Sequence record: OZ240615.1
DNA length: 64,000 nt
Strand: one strand, 5' to 3'
The position numbers and the translations under genes were made by a program. Position 1 is the first letter of the stretch, and the number at the start of each line of letters is the position of its first letter. The notes beneath the pieces are model-generated. The model saw only the letters and a program-made list of their open reading frames with translations, was not told the origin of the DNA and ran no database searches. Shown here in pieces: positions 2,430 to 50,910 of this stretch.

Positions 2430-4118
2430 TTAGTAGTGGCGCGTCAGCGAATAACGCACGGTCGTGCCGTCCGCCATTTCAGCAACCAGATTGAAAGGTC
2501 CAGTGCTACGATAGATTTCAACACCGGTGTTCCCAGGGATTTGAATCCCTGCCGCAACAGAACCTTCCACTTCTTCCAGCTTATTCGCTTGGGAGAACGC
2601 TTCAACAACGCGACGAACATCGCGGAGTTCATGCGTCAGCTCTTCGGCAAACAGCGCAGATTGGTTTGAATTTTTGTCCTTAAATCCTTCGAGGACTAAA
2701 ATCATACCATGATCTGGAGTGTTGTACGTGAAGGTCTCTTTCCCGCCCCACGCTTGCGGAGAGAGGGTGATCCCAACCACTTTTACCGGACCCGTTGCAT
2801 CCGTCCAATTCATCAGACGAGAACCACCTTGGTAGCTGTAGCAAGAAACGGAGTTGCGCTTCTCTTCCGAATCCCAGCGATGGATAGGCTTGGCATCGAC
2901 AACCGCGCGATCTGTCATTTGAACGGTGTTGAATCTCGAATAGCCCGCGTTGTGGAATTCGACGGCCAACGATTGCGCCTTAGGTAAGACCTCCACCATA
3001 AATTGCATTAGGGAAATCGCACCGCCGTCAACAACCCGTTTCGCAGGGGCAACTTTCTCTTCTTTGGTTTTCAGGCCATCGAAGATGCTACCGACTTCTT
3101 CCGTCTCTTTTGCCGTCGCAGTCGGCTGCCATACCCATTCCTGAATATCGCTCACCAACGCGAAACGACGGCGGAACGCGGATTCGATCCCGAGCGTTTT
3201 CACTAACGTTTTCGCCTTTTCCAACTGTTCCTCAGTTGGAGCTTCAGTGGCGCGCATGTAGTTAACACCTTCAATGCTTTCACGGAATTTACGAATCGCG
3301 TATTGTTCGTGACCGCTTTGAATGTCGTCCATCAACACGCCGACAACCGTGGTGTGGAAATGAATGATGTCTTTGTTGTCAAAGTTCATCGCTTCCCACA
3401 CCAAGTTGTTTTTGATGTTGTTGTTTTTGGTAGCATTGAACTCGCGATGGAGTTTCGCCCAGGTTTTAAACCGGTTGGCGAATTTGGTGATATGTTTCAA
3501 TTCACCGTGTTCGAACAGTTCAACAGCCCGCTGCACTGTTTCAGGTGCCCAGCGTGTCAGGCCACTGCGCAGGATACGGACCAGTTCACGCCCTTCTGCT
3601 TCTTTACCTAAACGCTCTTCGTCGTTATCGTAAGTAAAGATCAGCGCAGTTGATGCGCAGTTCAGTTTACCGTTGAAGTGGCGGAATTTACCGGAATGCT
3701 TCAGCGAGTAATCGGCGACGTTCTCCACGACGATGTCGGTTACCGGGCAACGGGCGATAATACGGTTCAATGCCTTAACCATCGCGTATGCGTTGGTGTG
3801 CGGTTCGCCCTCTGCTTCGATATCAATATCGAAAGCCAGGCTCTTAGCTACACCGTCGTCGATGGTCACATACTGACCGAATTTATTCAGCCAACGTTCA
3901 CAGGTTTTACAGGTGTACTGTTGACGCTGCTCTTCCGGAAACAGGCTCAGGTAATGTTGATACAGCGATTTACCAGTGCTGGCTTCAACATCGACTTTAT
4001 AAATATCGTCATCGATATCGAAAAGAGAAAGGTTGTGCTCAATAATATCAACCAAAGAATCGTAAAAACGATCTTCAGCGACAACAGTTTCATTGGAAGC
4101 TACAATTTGTTCAGACAT
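2430..4118 (-). CDS. Conserved large hypothetical phage protein
   Basis: 562 aa; contains RQQYTCKTCERWLNKFG (CxxC) and RRFA..DI motifs that I recall from a family in large phages and bacteria. Confidence 0.85.
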   Translation of the reverse strand: MSEQIVASNETVVAEDRFYDSLVDIIEHNLSLFDIDDDIYKVDVEASTGKSLYQHYLSLFPEEQRQQYTCKTCERWLNKFGQYVTIDDGVAKSLAFDIDIEAEGEPHTNAYAMVKALNRIIARCPVTDIVVENVADYSLKHSGKFRHFNGKLNCASTALIFTYDNDEERLGKEAEGRELVRILRSGLTRWAPETVQRAVELFEHGELKHITKFANRFKTWAKLHREFNATKNNNIKNNLVWEAMNFDNKDIIHFHTTVVGVLMDDIQSGHEQYAIRKFRESIEGVNYMRATEAPTEEQLEKAKTLVKTLGIESAFRRRFALVSDIQEWVWQPTATAKETEEVGSIFDGLKTKEEKVAPAKRVVDGGAISLMQFMVEVLPKAQSLAVEFHNAGYSRFNTVQMTDRAVVDAKPIHRWDSEEKRNSVSCYSYQGGSRLMNWTDATGPVKVVGITLSPQAWGGKETFTYNTPDHGMILVLEGFKDKNSNQSALFAEELTHELRDVRRVVEAFSQANKLEEVEGSVAAGIQIPGNTGVEIYRSTGPFNLVAEMADGTTVRYSLTRHY

Positions 4119-4172
4119 GTCTTTTCCTATTTTGCAAAATAAGGGGTTTTGTTCAGAGTAATTCTAACGGGT

Positions 4173-4766
4173 TTATTTTCGGAACAGATTTAAAAATCGG
4201 GTAAGTAAAGAAGGGCGAGATTTCCGCATAACTTCAGCCCAGTACGCGCCTTCATCGACAGGGGTTTTATCGGTAGCAGATGCATAATCGGAATAATTGG
4301 CGGCAGTGGTATATTCATCGGAGGTCGTGTATCGATTAGGGTCCGCGTACGTCTTTCGCTTTTCCTGTTTAGCGTCCTGCAGCCGTTGTCGCTGTACTGC
4401 CTCTTCAGCGATATAAGTATTTTTATTACGCATGAAATCCATCAGTGAGGCTAAAGCCAATTCCGCGCGCGCGGTGGAATTGTAGGTGATGGAGCAATTG
4501 TTCACGTTCCGCCCATCGTTCGTTTGGAAACGGACTAGACCATCACCGTTTGACAAAGTGAACACTTCATTAGTGACCACATTCAGCGAAGCAACCGGGA
4601 CCGCTATTGTAATAACGTCGCCCATAATTTCCAACTGGGTGCCGTTATCGATTATTATCCAAAAACGATTTTCCACCTGTTGAACCAGTTTCCCCAAAAA
4701 GTCCGTTCGCTCTGGAATGACCGCACCGTTTTCGTTAGGGACGTCACTACGAATGTTATCTTGCAT
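4173..4766 (-). CDS. Hypothetical protein
   Basis: 197 aa ORF. Confidence 0.8.
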   Translation of the reverse strand: MQDNIRSDVPNENGAVIPERTDFLGKLVQQVENRFWIIIDNGTQLEIMGDVITIAVPVASLNVVTNEVFTLSNGDGLVRFQTNDGRNVNNCSITYNSTARAELALASLMDFMRNKNTYIAEEAVQRQRLQDAKQEKRKTYADPNRYTTSDEYTTAANYSDYASATDKTPVDEGAYWAEVMRKSRPSLLTRFLNLFRK

Positions 4767-5124
4767 GAGGAAGCTCCGGGGTTAGATCGCCAACTTTAAG
4801 AACGGTAACAGCGTGATTCTTTTTATCGTACGGGACAAAGGCAATACAGAAGTAGCGTTCTTCTTGCATCAGTTGAACAACTCTCCCTTCTGATTTAATA
4901 TCCTTCCCTTCCCACTTGACTGCCGTGAAAACTTCGTCGAAGGCAAATACTAAATTTCCTTCTGGCTCTTTCCATTCTGCCTCGGTTTCGCTAGCGATGA
5001 CGATCTTAACATCACCAACGTAGAAGAATCGTTTTCCGTTGCGAATATAGAAAGTTGCTTCCGCATCGCGAAACGGTTGGAAATCAATAAAATCCATTTC
5101 CTCAAGAATAAACGTCTTCGCCAT
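4756..5124 (-). CDS. Hypothetical protein
   Basis: 122 aa ORF overlapping the neighbour. Confidence 0.8.
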   Translation of the reverse strand: MAKTFILEEMDFIDFQPFRDAEATFYIRNGKRFFYVGDVKIVIASETEAEWKEPEGNLVFAFDEVFTAVKWEGKDIKSEGRVVQLMQEERYFCIAFVPYDKKNHAVTVLKVGDLTPELPHAR

Positions 5125-5127
5125 AGC

Positions 5128-5457
5128 TTAATCCGCCAGATCAATAATTTGCTCGGTAAAAGGGAACCGGTTCGCTAACAACTCCATACAGGTTCCTACC
5201 GAATCGCCAATGAAATAGTAGTCGTAAAGCATCCCGCTCGTATGACGGTGTTTGACGTGTAGTATCAGTCCTTTACGATCGGCTGCGTAAAAGTCATTAA
5301 ACCACGTAGAGGTGATGTACTCACCTACACCAAACACAGCCCGTAAATAATCTTTCACCGTCATCTGTTCATTTTCCGGGAAAAATCCAAACGACTTTAT
5401 CTCGAACAGTTCAAAGCGATGTTCTAATTGCATGTTAACTCCCTCGTTAAAGGCCAC
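5128..5457 (-). CDS. Hypothetical protein (true start may be the internal MQLEH)
   Basis: 109 aa ORF; GAGG precedes the internal ATG. Confidence 0.75.
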   Translation of the reverse strand: MAFNEGVNMQLEHRFELFEIKSFGFFPENEQMTVKDYLRAVFGVGEYITSTWFNDFYAADRKGLILHVKHRHTSGMLYDYYFIGDSVGTCMELLANRFPFTEQIIDLAD

Positions 5458-5464
5458 AAAAAGA

Positions 5465-5488
5465 CTCCTGAGGCAATAACCTCAGGAG
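5465..5488 (-). terminator. Hairpin, probable terminator
   Basis: ctcctgagg-caataa-cctcaggag, then T-rich on minus. Confidence 0.7.
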
Positions 5489-5494
5489 ACCGTA

Positions 5495-6271
5495 CTATTT
5501 ACGCTTTTTCTTTTTGGATTGCCCAGAAGCGTGTTTAGACACGCGTTTAGGGCGTGCCGGTGGCGCGGTGAAAAGGTTGCGTTTTCCGCCCATACTGAAC
5601 CCGCCATTGAAAGAGAAGCTGGTCTGGAACTCTGAGGGCAGGGCTTCTTTAAACTTGGTTTTCCACGCCAGACGCAGCGCTACGTGATTAACCTGAAATG
5701 CCCCTTGAACAAACCAGTCGCCCGGGTTACGCTCAATCAGCGTTTTCCCGCCGTAGCTTGCAGTGACGGTGTTCTCTTCTTGGCTGACAACAATACTGAC
5801 AACCGGGTGTTCGATCGCTGGTTTTTCTGCATTGACCAGCTCGGAAGCACTGTCTAATTCGATGTGCTTCGTTGAAAGATCCGCAGGGGTAATTTCGTGC
5901 CGATAATATTCACCGGGGTTGTCATCAACTTCAATCCCTTTCCCGAATCGTCCGGACTGAGAATGATTTTGTACCTTTTTGGTATCAGGGATAAATGCGG
6001 GTTCGTCTACGTAAATAAGACGACTCTTTTCTTTTGGTGTTTCTGCTGCAGGTAGTACTAATCTATCGTACGGGGAACGTACATGGAAATTGAAAGGTTT
6101 TAACTCGCGACCATCGCCCTGTACGCGTTCTAATTCTTCTTCAGAAATAAACGCCGGGTCATCTACCGGAATGGTCAGTCGTGTTTGCCCGCGGCCGAGA
6201 ACGTTGTGTTTTTCCGCGAGAGTTTCAGCGGTGATCACGCCTTCTACAGCTTCGATTTTTTTACTTTCCAT
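5495..6271 (-). CDS. Hypothetical protein with basic C-terminus
   Basis: 258 aa ORF ending in SKKKKRK. Confidence 0.8.
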   Translation of the reverse strand: MESKKIEAVEGVITAETLAEKHNVLGRGQTRLTIPVDDPAFISEEELERVQGDGRELKPFNFHVRSPYDRLVLPAAETPKEKSRLIYVDEPAFIPDTKKVQNHSQSGRFGKGIEVDDNPGEYYRHEITPADLSTKHIELDSASELVNAEKPAIEHPVVSIVVSQEENTVTASYGGKTLIERNPGDWFVQGAFQVNHVALRLAWKTKFKEALPSEFQTSFSFNGGFSMGGKRNLFTAPPARPKRVSKHASGQSKKKKRK

Positions 6272-6671: not shown

Positions 6672-6696
6672 ATCGAGTTACCAAACTAAAAAATAA

Positions 6697-6724
6697 ATTG
6701 AGGGGATCCGAAGACCCCCTCAAT
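6697..6724 (-). terminator. Intrinsic terminator with UUCG tetraloop
   Basis: Minus strand attgagggggtc-ttcg-gatcccctcaat plus T-tract. Confidence 0.85.
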
Positions 6725-6726
6725 CG

Positions 6727-7200
6727 TTAATTTACCAAATAGAAGATAACGTCTTCAGCGAGCGTAAAGTTGGTGAGCAGGGACTCATAAGTCTTGTCCC
6801 GACGTACGCGGCTAAAATAAAAATACGCTTCGTCTACGTAAACGTGCGTAATGGGGTGTTTTCGGTACGCAGCGGTATAACCCTGTTCGTACGGTTTTCC
6901 GACGATGACCCTTAAGTCTTGTGGTATTACCCCAGCGTTACGCGTAAACCGAGACAAAAGTTCTTCTTTCATTTCACTCGTCGGGAATAAGATGAGTGAG
7001 TGGGCGGGGTCTTTTTTAGCCCGTGAAAATATCCACTCGGTCTTTCCTGTTTGCCGCGTTGCAGTAAAGCCAATAGTGCGACACTCTCGAAGTAAAATCG
7101 GTCGTCGCCAATCACAACGTTTGGCCTGTTCAGAATTCTCTGAGATAAGCGTCTTTTCTAATACCTGCGCAATTGATTCAAAATCGTTTTTATTTGCCAT
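6727..7200 (-). CDS. Stand-alone P-loop NTPase-like domain
   Basis: RQTGKT (Walker A-like) and VYVDEA (Walker B-like) in 157 aa. Confidence 0.6.
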   Translation of the reverse strand: MANKNDFESIAQVLEKTLISENSEQAKRCDWRRPILLRECRTIGFTATRQTGKTEWIFSRAKKDPAHSLILFPTSEMKEELLSRFTRNAGVIPQDLRVIVGKPYEQGYTAAYRKHPITHVYVDEAYFYFSRVRRDKTYESLLTNFTLAEDVIFYLVN

Positions 7201-8498: not shown

Positions 8499-8942
8499 CT
8501 ATTTCCTCACCTGAATACTATTAACCCACTTCTCATCCTCAGTTATTGGATAGAACTCCGTCGTTTTAATTTTACCGATTAAAGATAACCAACGTAAATA
8601 CGTTTCATCATCTACAAATAAAACCGCATTTTTTCTTTGATTAAATTCATCAGGGATTACCCTACTAATCCCCTGCGTAGGAAACGGAAGAGATTTGATT
8701 AACCGCCGTTGGTTAACTTCAATCTTTACTTGCTCTAAACCTCTACGAGCTTCTTCGAGTGTGGGTATATAACCTGTCTCAGCACTGACAAACGGATATA
8801 TTTCGGGTAGATTAAAATATCTTAGTTTTTCCTTCTTCGTCCAGTTTACTTTTCGATCTAGAAAAGCAATAATCGATTTGTCAGTAAAACCGAGAATAAA
8901 TCCTAATCTAGTGCAATGGCGTAAATTACCCAGATTTAACAT
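8499..8942 (-). CDS. Hypothetical protein
   Basis: 147 aa ORF, TAATG-coupled to upstream gene. Confidence 0.75.
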   Translation of the reverse strand: MLNLGNLRHCTRLGFILGFTDKSIIAFLDRKVNWTKKEKLRYFNLPEIYPFVSAETGYIPTLEEARRGLEQVKIEVNQRRLIKSLPFPTQGISRVIPDEFNQRKNAVLFVDDETYLRWLSLIGKIKTTEFYPITEDEKWVNSIQVRK

Positions 8943-9916
8943 TACACCTCCTTATTCAACCCAGAAACGATAGTGGCACGGATCCATTTGAATTTCAACT
9001 TCCGTACCCCATTGACAACAGGTCCTACCCAGTAACCGTGCCAATGGGCACGACGAATATGCGCTGCTCTTCCGTAGGTCTTTTGCCCTTTCTTTCGTTG
9101 CTCCATTTCTTCGAGGTAATCAAACCCTACTGGAAACTTACGATGCGCATTCAGGAAACGCAAACTGTAGTGTTTACCCGAACGTTTCATTTTGGTTAAA
9201 CGAAAGGTGTTACGGAAATCAGCAGCGTCTTGTCGGTCATATTCCTGCGCGACGAACAAAGCTACATTCAACAGCTTAGTGTAAGTTTCACGATATCCGT
9301 CACGCATCAAAATATCTGCTGCGGCTTCTGCGTCAAGGTTGTGCTCCTTTGCAGCACGAATAATCGTCGGGTCTGAAGCAATAACTTCTTCCAGCGTCAG
9401 TCCTTCATCGAATGGAAAGAAGAGCGTTTGCGGGAATCCACCATCGTTATACGGGTAAACAATAGTCAGCCCTTCTTTCCCGCTCCAATGCGTAACAGTG
9501 GAGAGGAAAATCCCTTCAATGAGCGGCTCCTCCGGGAGGGGGTGTTTGATAGGGCACGCTGAAAGGTTGACGTACCCCGTCCAATGAGGAATGGTTTTCA
9601 GAACGGTTAGCGGCAATTTACCGTTGAACTCGGAGTCCAGCACATCTGCCAATAATTCAGAAGGGATTTGATATTCCGGTTTCGTGATTTGCCAGCAGTA
9701 GGTCATACTCGCGTGCCAGAACATTTCCCGGTAGTATGGATTATTGAAATCGATTCCCTTTGGGAACCCTTTGTTTTCACCCCATATTTCCAACGGGTAA
9801 AAATACGGTGGAATTTCTCCTTTCGTTTCCGTAAGGATGCGATTGAAGAAATCTTTTGCGTCCCACGCCCTCAAGCGCGGGAGTAAGGTTTTTTCTACGG
9901 TTTCAAGAATGTTCAT
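8942..9916 (-). CDS. AcrVA2/FinQ-family protein (putative translation-dependent mRNA-downregulation / anti-defence factor)
   Basis: 324 aa; C-terminal AHIRRAHWHGYWVG..KLKFKWI..TIV resembles AcrVA2 PHIRRGHWHGYWQG..FRVRW..VFV; WQITKPEYQI..LP.W.GYVNLS resembles AcrVA2 WRNTLGIYQL..LPDWCVYVDIS (recalled, not searched). Confidence 0.7.
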   Translation of the reverse strand: MNILETVEKTLLPRLRAWDAKDFFNRILTETKGEIPPYFYPLEIWGENKGFPKGIDFNNPYYREMFWHASMTYCWQITKPEYQIPSELLADVLDSEFNGKLPLTVLKTIPHWTGYVNLSACPIKHPLPEEPLIEGIFLSTVTHWSGKEGLTIVYPYNDGGFPQTLFFPFDEGLTLEEVIASDPTIIRAAKEHNLDAEAAADILMRDGYRETYTKLLNVALFVAQEYDRQDAADFRNTFRLTKMKRSGKHYSLRFLNAHRKFPVGFDYLEEMEQRKKGQKTYGRAAHIRRAHWHGYWVGPVVNGVRKLKFKWIRATIVSGLNKEV

Positions 9917-10466
9917 GGAATCTTTTCTCCATTCCTTCGTCTACATGCCAACAAAACAGAGAGAAAAAATGCTCTTCCATAGATTGCGGCAATAATGAGA
10001 AATTAGCGGGAGTGACGATATTGTATTTTTTCTTGTTCGATAGAGCGACGATAAAATGACTCTTAGTAACTCTGACCGAAACAATCTCGTGGCCATACAT
10101 CTTATTAATTTGTTTGCCATCTCTTATTCGGAGCCCGACAATTCCTTGCCCTATGCGTAATCCATTTTTAGAGGAAGGGACAACCCAGTCCCCTTGACGT
10201 TTTTTGAAGAAATTCCACCAAAGGCTCACCGGGATAAACCAGTGAGCATCTTTAAGATTTCTTCCCGTATGGTAAGAGATAGCCTCGTACATTTCCTTTT
10301 GCGTTAAAGTCGTCCCCTCTTGGTCAGGGGTATTTATTTTTACTCCCATTTTTTCAGAGTAAACAAACATGATGATAGAGTTATCGCGAAGAAATAAATT
10401 TTCGCTTACCCACTTACCGTACTCTATCTCTAACTCAAGAACTTTTTCTGCTGTACTCTTTTCCAT
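9903..10466 (-). CDS. Hypothetical protein
   Basis: 187 aa ORF. Confidence 0.75.
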   Translation of the reverse strand: MEKSTAEKVLELEIEYGKWVSENLFLRDNSIIMFVYSEKMGVKINTPDQEGTTLTQKEMYEAISYHTGRNLKDAHWFIPVSLWWNFFKKRQGDWVVPSSKNGLRIGQGIVGLRIRDGKQINKMYGHEIVSVRVTKSHFIVALSNKKKYNIVTPANFSLLPQSMEEHFFSLFCWHVDEGMEKRFHEHS

Positions 10467-10492
10467 CTTTTACCCGATCAGTGCTAATTACA

Positions 10493-10681
10493 TTAGATGT
10501 CTAACGTGGGGTTCCACCAAGTAGCAAGTCTGTCCAAATCTTTGACCACTTTGGCAGCCTGCCTTGCCGGGATACGGTACTTTCTGGCTACCCGGCGTTT
10601 TGCGCTTTGTACAGTAGTCATGCAGGTGGAAAGGTCGTAGGTGACCAAGTTATCTATTTTCTTGCGTAAAGATTCTTTCAT
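10493..10681 (-). CDS. Small basic hypothetical protein
   Basis: 62 aa, TAATG coupling. Confidence 0.7.
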   Translation of the reverse strand: MKESLRKKIDNLVTYDLSTCMTTVQSAKRRVARKYRIPARQAAKVVKDLDRLATWWNPTLDI

Positions 10682-11846: not shown

Positions 11847-11862
11847 GTGATATAGACTTTAA
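11847..11862 (-). promoter_or_regulatory. Putative early promoter motif
   Basis: Minus strand TTAAAGTCTATATCAC, between terminator and operon start. Confidence 0.75.
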
Positions 11863-11885
11863 ATGTAATCGAAACAAAAAATAAA

Positions 11886-11913
11886 AGAGAGAGGAGGGGT
11901 TCCTCCTCTCTCT
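11886..11913 (-). terminator. Intrinsic terminator
   Basis: agagagaggagg-ggtt-cctcctctctct plus T-tract. Confidence 0.85.
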
Positions 11914-11918
11914 GTGTG

Positions 11919-12278
11919 TCAGTGAAAAAAGCGATAAGACCAAACCCCCAACCAGACTGACGCCATTACCAAAGTAAAAATATTTAACATTACGCCAAGC
12001 ATAGTTGCAAAAGTATTTTTCTGGTATTGACGCCGGTGGATTAAGTATCCGGGGTAATAGAGTACCCAAAGGAAACTCGGCGACTTCCCGGTTTTGTTCC
12101 CCACGACAAATTTATCCATCGCAATCAGATAAGTTATCCAGAAGAAATAAACGACAGACATCAGCCATAGCGAATTAAAAGGCCAGAGGGTAATAATGGG
12201 ATGATAGGCCCAGAGAAAATAATAACCGAAGGTGAGCAGATAGCCGAGCAGGAAAAAGAAATTCTTCATTGCAGGCAC
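11919..12278 (-). CDS. Small multi-pass membrane protein, paralog of 31976..32383
   Basis: 3-4 hydrophobic segments; D...PSFLWVLYYPGYLIHR motif. Confidence 0.8.
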   Translation of the reverse strand: MPAMKNFFFLLGYLLTFGYYFLWAYHPIITLWPFNSLWLMSVVYFFWITYLIAMDKFVVGNKTGKSPSFLWVLYYPGYLIHRRQYQKNTFATMLGVMLNIFTLVMASVWLGVWSYRFFH

Positions 12279-12733
12279 TGCGTAGAAAAACCACGAAGGA
12301 AGCGAAAGATATCTTCCCGGGTTTTTAGATCAGTTAACTCTTGCCACGGCGCTTCTTTCCAGAACTGAACCGAAAGAGAATAGTGATTGATGCAACCCGC
12401 GTAACTGTCAACGTAAACGTTTAAACGGATAGCGAAGATACTAGAGAGTCGCGGAGTTTTGATCGGTAAACGAATGATAAAATTAGCGTAGGTACCAACG
12501 GTCGTCTCGAGGTAAGTTTCCGAAAAAAATTCCAGCTTCGGAAAATAATGCGGGTCGATATAGGGTGCTTTCAGAATGTTGTTGCCACCACCCAACCAGT
12601 TTGCGGTATCTTTCAGGGATCGCAAGAACAGTTGTTTATTCCGTTCAGGAAAATCAGAGCGCTCCAGTTTAACGAACCCTAATAATTCTTTACCGAGAAC
12701 AACTTTTGTATCAAATTTCATTATTTTCTCCAA
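12266..12733 (-). CDS. Hypothetical protein
   Basis: 155 aa ORF. Confidence 0.75.
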   Translation of the reverse strand: MEKIMKFDTKVVLGKELLGFVKLERSDFPERNKQLFLRSLKDTANWLGGGNNILKAPYIDPHYFPKLEFFSETYLETTVGTYANFIIRLPIKTPRLSSIFAIRLNVYVDSYAGCINHYSLSVQFWKEAPWQELTDLKTREDIFRFLRGFSTQCLQ

Positions 12734-13029
12734 ATTAAGGGGATTGTAAACCTAGAAGGGATTTTGCGATGTTTGAGTTTAGCTTTTGCTTTATCGGAAC
12801 AAACGATGCTCAACTCAACACTTTCAGGCAGAAGAAGGTCCAGTCGTTTAATTTTCTCAACCAGACCTTTCACTGAGACCGGATCGCATGAAGTAACGAC
12901 TCCCCCACCAATGACCCTGTTATCTAGCAATAAATTGCTTTGCAGTTTGATAGGATCTAAAGTATTCTGGACATCTATTACCCACTTTTCAAGACCGGGT
13001 ATTTTATGGTAATCGGGGAGTGTTTTCAT
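12721..13029 (-). CDS. Hypothetical protein
   Basis: 102 aa ORF. Confidence 0.7.
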   Translation of the reverse strand: MKTLPDYHKIPGLEKWVIDVQNTLDPIKLQSNLLLDNRVIGGGVVTSCDPVSVKGLVEKIKRLDLLLPESVELSIVCSDKAKAKLKHRKIPSRFTIPLIWRK

Positions 13030-13033
13030 TTTT

Positions 13034-31894: not shown

Positions 31895-31910
31895 GTGATA
31901 TAGACTTGAA
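31895..31910 (-). promoter_or_regulatory. Putative early promoter motif
   Basis: Minus strand TTCAAGTCTATATCAC with upstream T-tract. Confidence 0.75.
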
Positions 31911-32450: not shown

Positions 32451-32466
32451 GGGATATAGATGTCAA
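32451..32466 (-). promoter_or_regulatory. Putative early promoter motif (one mismatch)
   Basis: Minus strand TTGACATCTATATCCC. Confidence 0.65.
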
Positions 32467-37561: not shown

Positions 37562-38035
37562 TTATTCCTCGAGGTTAATGCGGCGAAGGATGTAAGGACG
37601 GATGTCTTGATTTCCTGTACGGAATTTATCAACGATGATACTGATGCCGTCTGCGCCCTCATAAACGAAAACAGACATATCGGCTTCGTTGTCGATACGC
37701 AGCGACGTATGATATCTGCTGAAATAATCATCGGGATTATCAGGGAAGCGATTCTTGTTCATCGGTTGCTGATAAAACATGATAATTCCACCAACCTCGG
37801 CGACTTCCCGAGTTTCTCGCAGCAATGTTAAGACCTCGTACTCATTCTCACCGGTTGTACGGTTAGGTGGGATATAGACGTCCTGAGGCGTTTCCCCTTC
37901 CATGCAGAATAATCCAGCGATCTTTTGTGCAACGTCAACTTGGTTGGTTTCACTGATCGTTTTGATGATCACCAACCCGCCCTTTTGGAAAAGTCCAGTT
38001 TGACGGAAAATAGCGTTAAGTTCAGAGATTTTCAT
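37562..38035 (-). CDS. Hypothetical protein between nadR and pnuC
   Basis: 157 aa ORF, ATGA overlap with nadR. Confidence 0.75.
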   Translation of the reverse strand: MKISELNAIFRQTGLFQKGGLVIIKTISETNQVDVAQKIAGLFCMEGETPQDVYIPPNRTTGENEYEVLTLLRETREVAEVGGIIMFYQQPMNKNRFPDNPDDYFSRYHTSLRIDNEADMSVFVYEGADGISIIVDKFRTGNQDIRPYILRRINLEE

Positions 38036-50894: not shown

Positions 50895-50910
50895 GTGATA
50901 TAGATGTGAA
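50895..50910 (-). promoter_or_regulatory. Putative early promoter motif
   Basis: Minus strand TTCACATCTATATCAC. Confidence 0.75.

Follow-up and report, generated by a model that had tools for sequence, protein, structure and literature searches.

The minus-strand gene at positions 8942..9916 of the window, by which we mean the whole 64-kb stretch of DNA analysed here (the last part of the 299,730-bp genome of Klebsiella phage vB_KpM_Centimanus, OZ240615.1), encodes a member of the AcrVA2/FinQ family. This assignment was first proposed in a reading made from the DNA letters alone (the sequence-only reading), and sequence, profile, fold, and motif evidence now agree on it. AcrVA2 binds the N-terminal peptide of nascent Cas12a, which leads to a translation-dependent loss of the cas12a mRNA (Marino et al.). 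Because the Centimanus protein retains the whole conserved C-terminal module of the family and every residue that is essential in AcrVA2, an AcrVA2-type mechanism appears to be the most likely one, and we consider it probable that the protein acts in this manner on a target other than Cas12a.

ORF calling in the window gave an intact open reading frame (ORF) with an ATG start and a length of 324 amino acids (aa). The start is supported by a GGAG sequence 10–13 nt before the ATG and by the first methionine, which is invariant across all close homologues. The same coding sequence is present in the public record as CENTIMANUS_00290 (CAM8750893.1), where it is labelled 'hypothetical protein'. All of the strings quoted in the sequence-only reading were located in the translation: YCWQITKPEYQI corresponds to residues 73–84, IPHWTGYVNLS to residues 109–119, AHIRRAHWHGYWVG to residues 285–298, and KLKFKWI to residues 305–311.

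A phmmer search with the single sequence against 177,635 PDB sequences detected AcrVA2 (7ci1_A, 323 aa) with an expectation (E) value of 1.1e-5. The match consists of two collinear stretches (residues 74–123 against 79–126 of AcrVA2, and 274–317 against 275–316), in accordance with the earlier claim that the length and two motif blocks of the protein are those of AcrVA2. With a profile of nine sequences, namely the query and eight homologues from a collection of 5.8 billion proteins, the E value for AcrVA2 was 5.4e-20, and a single alignment covered residues 73–320 of the query and 75–318 of AcrVA2. The similarity extends beyond the short C-terminal motif. A motif-free profile restricted to residues 1–270, which combined the query with seven phage homologues from DNA reference sequences, still had AcrVA2 as its best PDB match (E value of 7.3e-4; residues 78–144 against 79–144). 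The connection to FinQ suggested in the sequence-only reading was also found, as plasmid genes of Enterobacter and Serratia that carry the label 'protein finQ' matched residues 75–312 in tblastn searches with E values of 7e-9 to 4e-8.

The fold comparison, which the same reading had recommended, led to the same protein. The AlphaFold2 model has a mean predicted local distance difference test (pLDDT) score of 76.7 and a predicted template modelling (pTM) score of 0.81. In a Foldseek search of the PDB with this model, the only matches with E values of 0.001 or below were the AcrVA2 chains 7ci2_A, 7ci1_B, and 7ci1_A (E values of 2.3e-10 to 8.4e-10, probability of 1.0, template modelling (TM) scores of 0.48–0.53), and the next match had an E value of 0.17. 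A fold search of BFVD returned members of the same family that are uncharacterised, from phages of Erwinia and Dickeya and from uncultured phages, with E values of about 1e-13.

Database labels point in the same direction where they exist. A precomputed PF26125 ('AcrVA2-like') tag is attached to relatives with 92, 84, 70, 50, 49, and 44% identity to the query. Scans of the query against Pfam-A and NCBIfam gave no match, but Pfam-A was equally blank for the relatives that carry the PF26125 tag. Because these tagged relatives were unmatched too, the Pfam-A copy used here seems to lack PF26125, and the null result does not count against membership. Among the PHROGs, the protein belongs to phrog_6160, a group of unassigned function. 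Neither the protein nor four of its neighbours matched any PADLOC-DB model at an E value of 0.1 or below.

Mutational data on AcrVA2 allow a closer look at the residues that matter. In that protein, the H286A, R288A, and H291A mutations abolish the down-regulation of the Cas12a mRNA and leave binding intact, W79A also abolishes down-regulation, and D89A causes a moderate loss of function (Marino et al.). After correction for the numbering of the AcrVA2 PDB chain, which is that of the paper plus one, W75, H286, R288, and H291 of the Centimanus protein align with W79, H286, R288, and H291 of AcrVA2. We compared these positions in a family alignment of 155 rows, which contains the query and 154 diverse relatives (the eight close homologues and the best representatives of clusters at 50% identity). 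R288 and H291 are each present in 100% of the rows, and W75, P102, P110, G135, H286, H293, G298, and W311 are each present in 99%. The position equivalent to D89 (residue 85) is occupied by aspartate in 71% of the rows and by proline in 6%; it is not invariant and therefore does not define membership of the family.

Conservation is unevenly distributed along the chain. The mean share of the commonest residue in the 155 rows is 0.80 at residues 285–300 and 0.54 at residues 73–120, whereas residues 1–72 and 121–230 are the least conserved stretches (0.19–0.25). The strongly conserved C-terminal module, which forms strands at residues 285–288, 291–297, 306–312, and 315–318 in the model, is the part of AcrVA2 that is needed for mRNA down-regulation (Marino et al.). 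Within the close clade of Klebsiella phages (7 rows), the commonest-residue share of residues 1–45 is 0.80, and the N-terminus is therefore clade-specific and not a disordered filler. Residues 1–72 are a candidate for the region that confers specificity.

Strong purifying selection acts on this gene; it is no relic. The ratio of nonsynonymous to synonymous substitution rates (dN/dS) is 0.05 in comparison with phage FBKp24 and 0.06 in comparison with phage MJ359, for which the proportion of synonymous differences (pS) is 0.68 and thus near saturation.

The claim that the gene belongs to a nucleus-forming jumbo phage was upheld. Centimanus is classified as Maaswegvirus centimanus in the family Chimalliviridae, and phiKp24 (FBKp24), which is 96% identical to it, is reported to have genes for the nucleus-shell protein and tubulin. 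Based on these genes and the taxonomy, Centimanus is a nucleus-forming jumbo phage. It is obligately lytic and cultivable, and it is a component of a therapeutic cocktail. The phage nucleus shields the DNA from DNA-targeting nucleases.

The family is very large. A profile search of 1.84 billion representative proteins gave 3,967 clusters (at 50% identity) with E values of 0.001 or below and 2,237 with E values of 1e-10 or below. Among plasmids, tblastn detected a homologue in 447 records, 393 of which are conjugative. Among 50,697 phage records, 85 have a homologue, and almost all of these are jumbo phages of Enterobacterales. They include the Chimalliviridae genera Maaswegvirus, Risingsunvirus, and Seoulvirus, as well as Alexandravirus, a genus that is not assigned to Chimalliviridae. 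The homologues of Alexandravirus, Risingsunvirus, Seoulvirus (SPN3US-like), and Special G, together with ORF43 of Shewanella phage Y11, belong to the same family as the Centimanus protein. These homologues are 22–28% identical to it (tblastn E values of 1e-4 to 7e-22), and the gene neighbourhoods in the other jumbo phages are unlike that in Centimanus.

Some of these relatives deserve comment in their own right. In Erwinia phage Special G, the homologue (gp231) bears the annotation 'putative protein FinQ', and that in Erwinia phage RisingSun (gp126; positions 4935–5936 of locus L005) is annotated 'putative mycothiosynthase', which is likely a mis-annotation. A metagenomic relative with 92% identity (P0001) is nearly identical to the Centimanus protein up to the HWH motif, but its last 30 residues differ at most positions, which suggests a local exchange or a rapid change of the last strands. 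In a relative with 44% identity from the metagenomic contig SRR27841372_5929 (locus L008, 1–5978), the AcrVA2-like gene lies beside an HTH_3 gene, a gene with a BubE domain, and five DUF7941 paralogues in tandem; this context is quite unlike that of Centimanus.

The novelty of the gene was overstated when it was first pointed out. About 1,800 homologues have been described from plasmids and 'megaphages'; Cas12a is typically absent, and other targets have been proposed for them (Marino et al.). The same authors see the family as a mediator of conflict between mobile elements. AcrVA2-like proteins have also been noted in huge phages (Al-Shayeb et al. 2020). The literature already contains the family and its Pfam entry, reports it from huge phages, notes the usual lack of Cas12a, and proposes targets other than Cas12a; the Centimanus gene reveals no new kind of system. 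What is new here is the naming of this gene and of the orthologues carried by FBKp24, MJ359, and the KpLz group, the strong constraint on it, its location in a probable early transcription unit, its clade-specific N-terminus, and the proline at the D89 position.

Three known systems can be compared with the Centimanus protein. The first, AcrVA2 of a Moraxella bovoculi prophage (PDB 7ci1/7ci2), resembles the Centimanus protein in chain length, in being phage-borne, and in the four residues W79, H286, R288, and H291, all of which are kept. However, the two proteins share only 15–17% identity in the structural alignment, their N-terminal parts are unrelated in sequence over the first 72 residues of the Centimanus protein, and D89 is replaced by proline. 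In addition, the Centimanus copy is in a lytic chimallivirus and has no acrVA1-like neighbour, all of its neighbours being orphans. Because of this divergence, the different context, and a host genus not known for Cas12a, its target is expected to differ from that of AcrVA2. FinQ, which inhibits fertility and is encoded by IncI-type plasmids (for example R820a), belongs to the same family, is enterobacterial, and acts on a target other than Cas12a by lowering mRNA: it inhibits F transfer by lowering the tra mRNA. It differs in sequence (about 27% identity) and in setting, since it is plasmid-borne and acts on the transfer operon of a co-resident plasmid, whereas the Centimanus copy belongs to a virulent phage. 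Older publications attribute the effect of FinQ to Rho-independent transcription termination. Mammalian tubulin autoregulation, in which a nascent N-terminal peptide is recognized on the ribosome and the mRNA that encodes it decays, is alike in concept; it has no homology to AcrVA2 and serves as an analogy only (cited by Marino et al.).

In the mechanism that we propose, the conserved C-terminal beta module (H286-x-R288, H291, H293, and W311) would associate with translating ribosomes and would trigger the loss of the mRNA under translation. Recognition of one particular protein, by its N-terminal peptide as it emerges, would fall to the clade-specific N-terminal part and the variable middle part. 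An editorial summary of Marino et al. 2026 describes the C-terminal part of AcrVA2 as associating with ribosomes and polysomes and recruiting a host enzyme. The target would most likely be a protein of the host or of a rival element that acts in the cytoplasm, the place where chimallivirus mRNAs are translated and exposed. The sequence-only reading had tentatively suggested another host protein in place of Cas12a, perhaps a defence specific to jumbo phages. A narrower version, which we put forward only tentatively and regard as rather doubtful, is that the protein of the Maaswegvirus clade may be a ribosome-level counter-defence factor that erases the mRNA of a host immune protein, either one that acts on RNA or translation or one that is induced by infection, with residues 1–72 as the recognition module. 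This version is suggested because the phage DNA is shielded in the nucleus while mRNAs and translation stay in the cytoplasm.

Several points weigh against the proposed mechanism. The global TM score to AcrVA2 in the Foldseek comparison of the AlphaFold2 model is only about 0.5, for which the domain orientation and low-confidence loops (residues 230–256 and 279–284) may be responsible. Residues 1–72 have no detectable sequence match to AcrVA2, as the profile alignment begins at residue 73, and the aspartate corresponding to D89 is not kept (P85). The route by which AcrVA2 itself brings about mRNA loss is only partly understood. The early timing of the transcription unit would follow from the analogy of a motif (see below), and the context gives no functional hint because all neighbouring genes are orphans.

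The same set of data can be read in other ways. The protein might silence mRNA as proposed but be directed at a rival element (a prophage, a co-infecting phage, or the transfer genes of a resident plasmid, for example), so that it would serve in FinQ-like competition or superinfection exclusion. The effect of FinQ on F transfer and tra mRNA, the 393 conjugative plasmids among the 447 plasmid records with a homologue, and the view of the family as a player in inter-element conflict (Marino et al.) all speak for such a role. A strictly lytic phage, however, gains little from blocked conjugation, and the gene is kept across several genera of jumbo phages with different hosts, which fits a target common to these hosts better than a sporadic plasmid. 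We regard this as unlikely. Co-translational shut-off of one housekeeping protein of the host or one early protein of the phage, for take-over of the cell or for the timing of the phage's own program, appears less probable still. The gene lies among small orphan genes that follow a promoter motif of the early type, where take-over genes are typically found; the strong purifying selection and the conservation above that of the neighbours fit a stable target outside an arms race, and tubulin autoregulation, the analogue named by Marino et al., is a self-regulatory circuit. Nevertheless, both of the family members that have been studied act on genes of another genetic element, and the patchy occurrence in jumbo phages (85 of the 50,697 phage records) marks the gene as accessory and not core.

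We give little credence to the view that the fold and motif were kept but the activity changed, for example to binding of a mature protein or of the ribosome without mRNA loss. P85 in place of the aspartate found in 71% of the family, the clade-specific 72 N-terminal residues, and the finding that AcrVA2 also binds peptides of mature Cas12a without inhibiting Cas12a (Marino et al.) would be compatible with it. The protein retains H286, R288, and H291, however, as well as the remaining near-invariant residues, and the D89A mutation in AcrVA2 causes only a moderate defect. Finally, the homology to AcrVA2 raises the question of whether the protein is a true anti-CRISPR against Cas12a. Klebsiella pneumoniae carries CRISPR systems of types I-E and IV-A, and Klebsiella is not known to have type V-A systems or Cas12a. 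The identity to AcrVA2 is low, homologues typically occur where Cas12a is absent, and formation of a nucleus already protects the phage from DNA-targeting nucleases. For these reasons Cas12a is very unlikely to be the target. As the family is usually found without Cas12a and the host genus is not known for it, we do not class the Centimanus protein as a functional anti-CRISPR. An AcrVA2-type mechanism with a different target thus remains the reading that we favour.

Transcription of the gene probably starts at a phage-specific promoter and covers an accessory-gene unit of approximately 5 kb. On the minus strand between 6500 and 13500, two sites were found with the features of a strong terminator, and no other strong terminator-like site is present there (Table 1). 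They delimit a unit of about 5.1 kb with 13 tightly packed small genes. The upstream hairpin ends the preceding gene, and the equivalent site in FBKp24 is annotated 'terminator'. The sequence-only reading had placed a putative early promoter at 11847, with no strong terminator between it and the gene. Both statements held: a promoter-like 10-mer occupies this position, and the minus strand is free of strong terminators from 11886 down to the downstream edge at 6725. The window contains five copies of the motif (TCTATATCMC), where 0.13 would be expected; every copy is on the minus strand, and a near-copy is located around position 690. Most copies are intergenic and have a T-rich tract upstream. 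According to a review of jumbo-phage RNA polymerases, every phage of this kind has an AT-rich motif, conserved and roughly 10 nt long, upstream of its early operons (PMC7598289). By analogy, the 10-mer is a candidate early promoter for the phage's own RNA polymerase, and early expression of the unit may be inferred on this basis. A sigma-70 promoter was also considered and rejected; coding-strand matches reached 9 of 12 positions at best, which says little about a phage that encodes its own RNA polymerases. The minus strand holds 88 of the 93 crude ORF calls in the window, and the GC skew is negative almost throughout. A tRNA scan of the whole window found no tRNA gene.

Table 1. Features of the AcrVA2-like protein, its neighbours, and its transcription unit (window coordinates).
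Feature	Position	Strand	Remarks
Residues 1–72 of the AcrVA2-like protein	9701..9916	-	N-terminal helical region; model helices 3–18, 21–30, 60–78
Residues 73–120	9557..9700	-	Family-wide block: W75, Y82, P102, P110, W112, Y115; P85
Residues 285–318	8963..9064	-	C-terminal four-strand beta module: H286-x-R288-x-x-H291-W-H293, G298, W311
147-aa orphan gene	8499..8942	-	ATG overlaps the AcrVA2-like stop (TAATG); AAGGAGG just upstream
187-aa orphan gene	9903..10466	-	Overlaps the AcrVA2-like start with its last 14 nt
62-aa orphan gene	10493..10681	-	Third member of conserved three-gene block; 62% identical in L007
Promoter-like 10-mer TCTATATCAC	11847..11856	-	T-rich tract before; in the 135-bp gap after the terminator
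Copies of TCTATATC[A/C]C	11847-11856, 31895-31904, 32451-32460, 37869-37878, 50895-50904	-	Pattern search of the window
Strong intrinsic-terminator-like hairpin and T run	11876..11913	-	12-bp stem, 7 G-C pairs; upstream edge of unit
Strong terminator-like hairpin and T run	6696..6725	-	13-bp stem; downstream edge of unit

Searches of the neighbouring genes against Pfam, PHROGs, and PADLOC gave no informative match. The overlap of the AcrVA2-like stop codon with the start of the 147-aa gene and the AAGGAGG before the latter suggest translational coupling of this pair. The 147-aa gene is present in FBKp24 and absent from MJ359. On the other side, the 187-aa gene has three homologous clusters in the collection of 5.8 billion proteins, all from the same phage group. 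It was considered as an obligate partner of the AcrVA2-like gene and rejected, because its relatives are confined to its own phage group and it is not adjacent to the AcrVA2-like gene in the relatives with 50% (L007) and 44% (L008) identity.

The AcrVA2-like gene, the 187-aa gene, and the 62-aa gene form a block (8942–10681) that corresponds to positions 2858–4975 of the MJ359 locus (L002). The identities between Centimanus and MJ359 are 95% for the 62-aa protein, 89% for the 187-aa protein, and 84.5% for the AcrVA2-like protein, with dN/dS values of 0.02, 0.17, and 0.06, respectively, whereas the remaining genes of the unit are 36–61% identical or missing. A similar conservation at the nucleotide level is seen in about a third of the surrounding 25 kb. 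Recent horizontal transfer of the block was considered as an explanation and rejected: purifying selection is the simpler reading because the synonymous sites are nearly saturated, dN/dS is low, and the surroundings are comparably conserved.

Two further observations concern the edges of the unit. Gene 314 of MJ359 (L002, 6297–6770) is annotated 'terminase large subunit', which is implausible for a protein of 157 aa; it is a homologue (61% identical) of the small orphan gene at 6727–7200 of the window. In FBKp24 (L003, 401–1753) and MJ359, a gene for an AAA ATPase is located directly upstream of the terminator of the unit. Centimanus has different small genes at this place (about 11919–13030), including an ORF for a hydrophobic protein of 119 aa.

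To our knowledge, AcrVA2 is the only protein of the bacterial world that silences one gene through its nascent polypeptide. Its family is very large, but only one target, Cas12a, is well established, and the tra genes of F are known as a target in outline. An intact and strongly constrained copy in a cultivable lytic Klebsiella phage offers a tractable setting in which to look for a second kind of target, and also to ask what a nucleus-forming phage must still switch off in the cytoplasm. In practical terms, FBKp24, MJ359, and the KpLz group have orthologues of CENTIMANUS_00290 that could be re-annotated together with it, and the 'putative mycothiosynthase' label in RisingSun could be corrected. 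If the tentative role in ribosome-level counter-defence is true, it would represent a class of target unlike any shown so far for this family.

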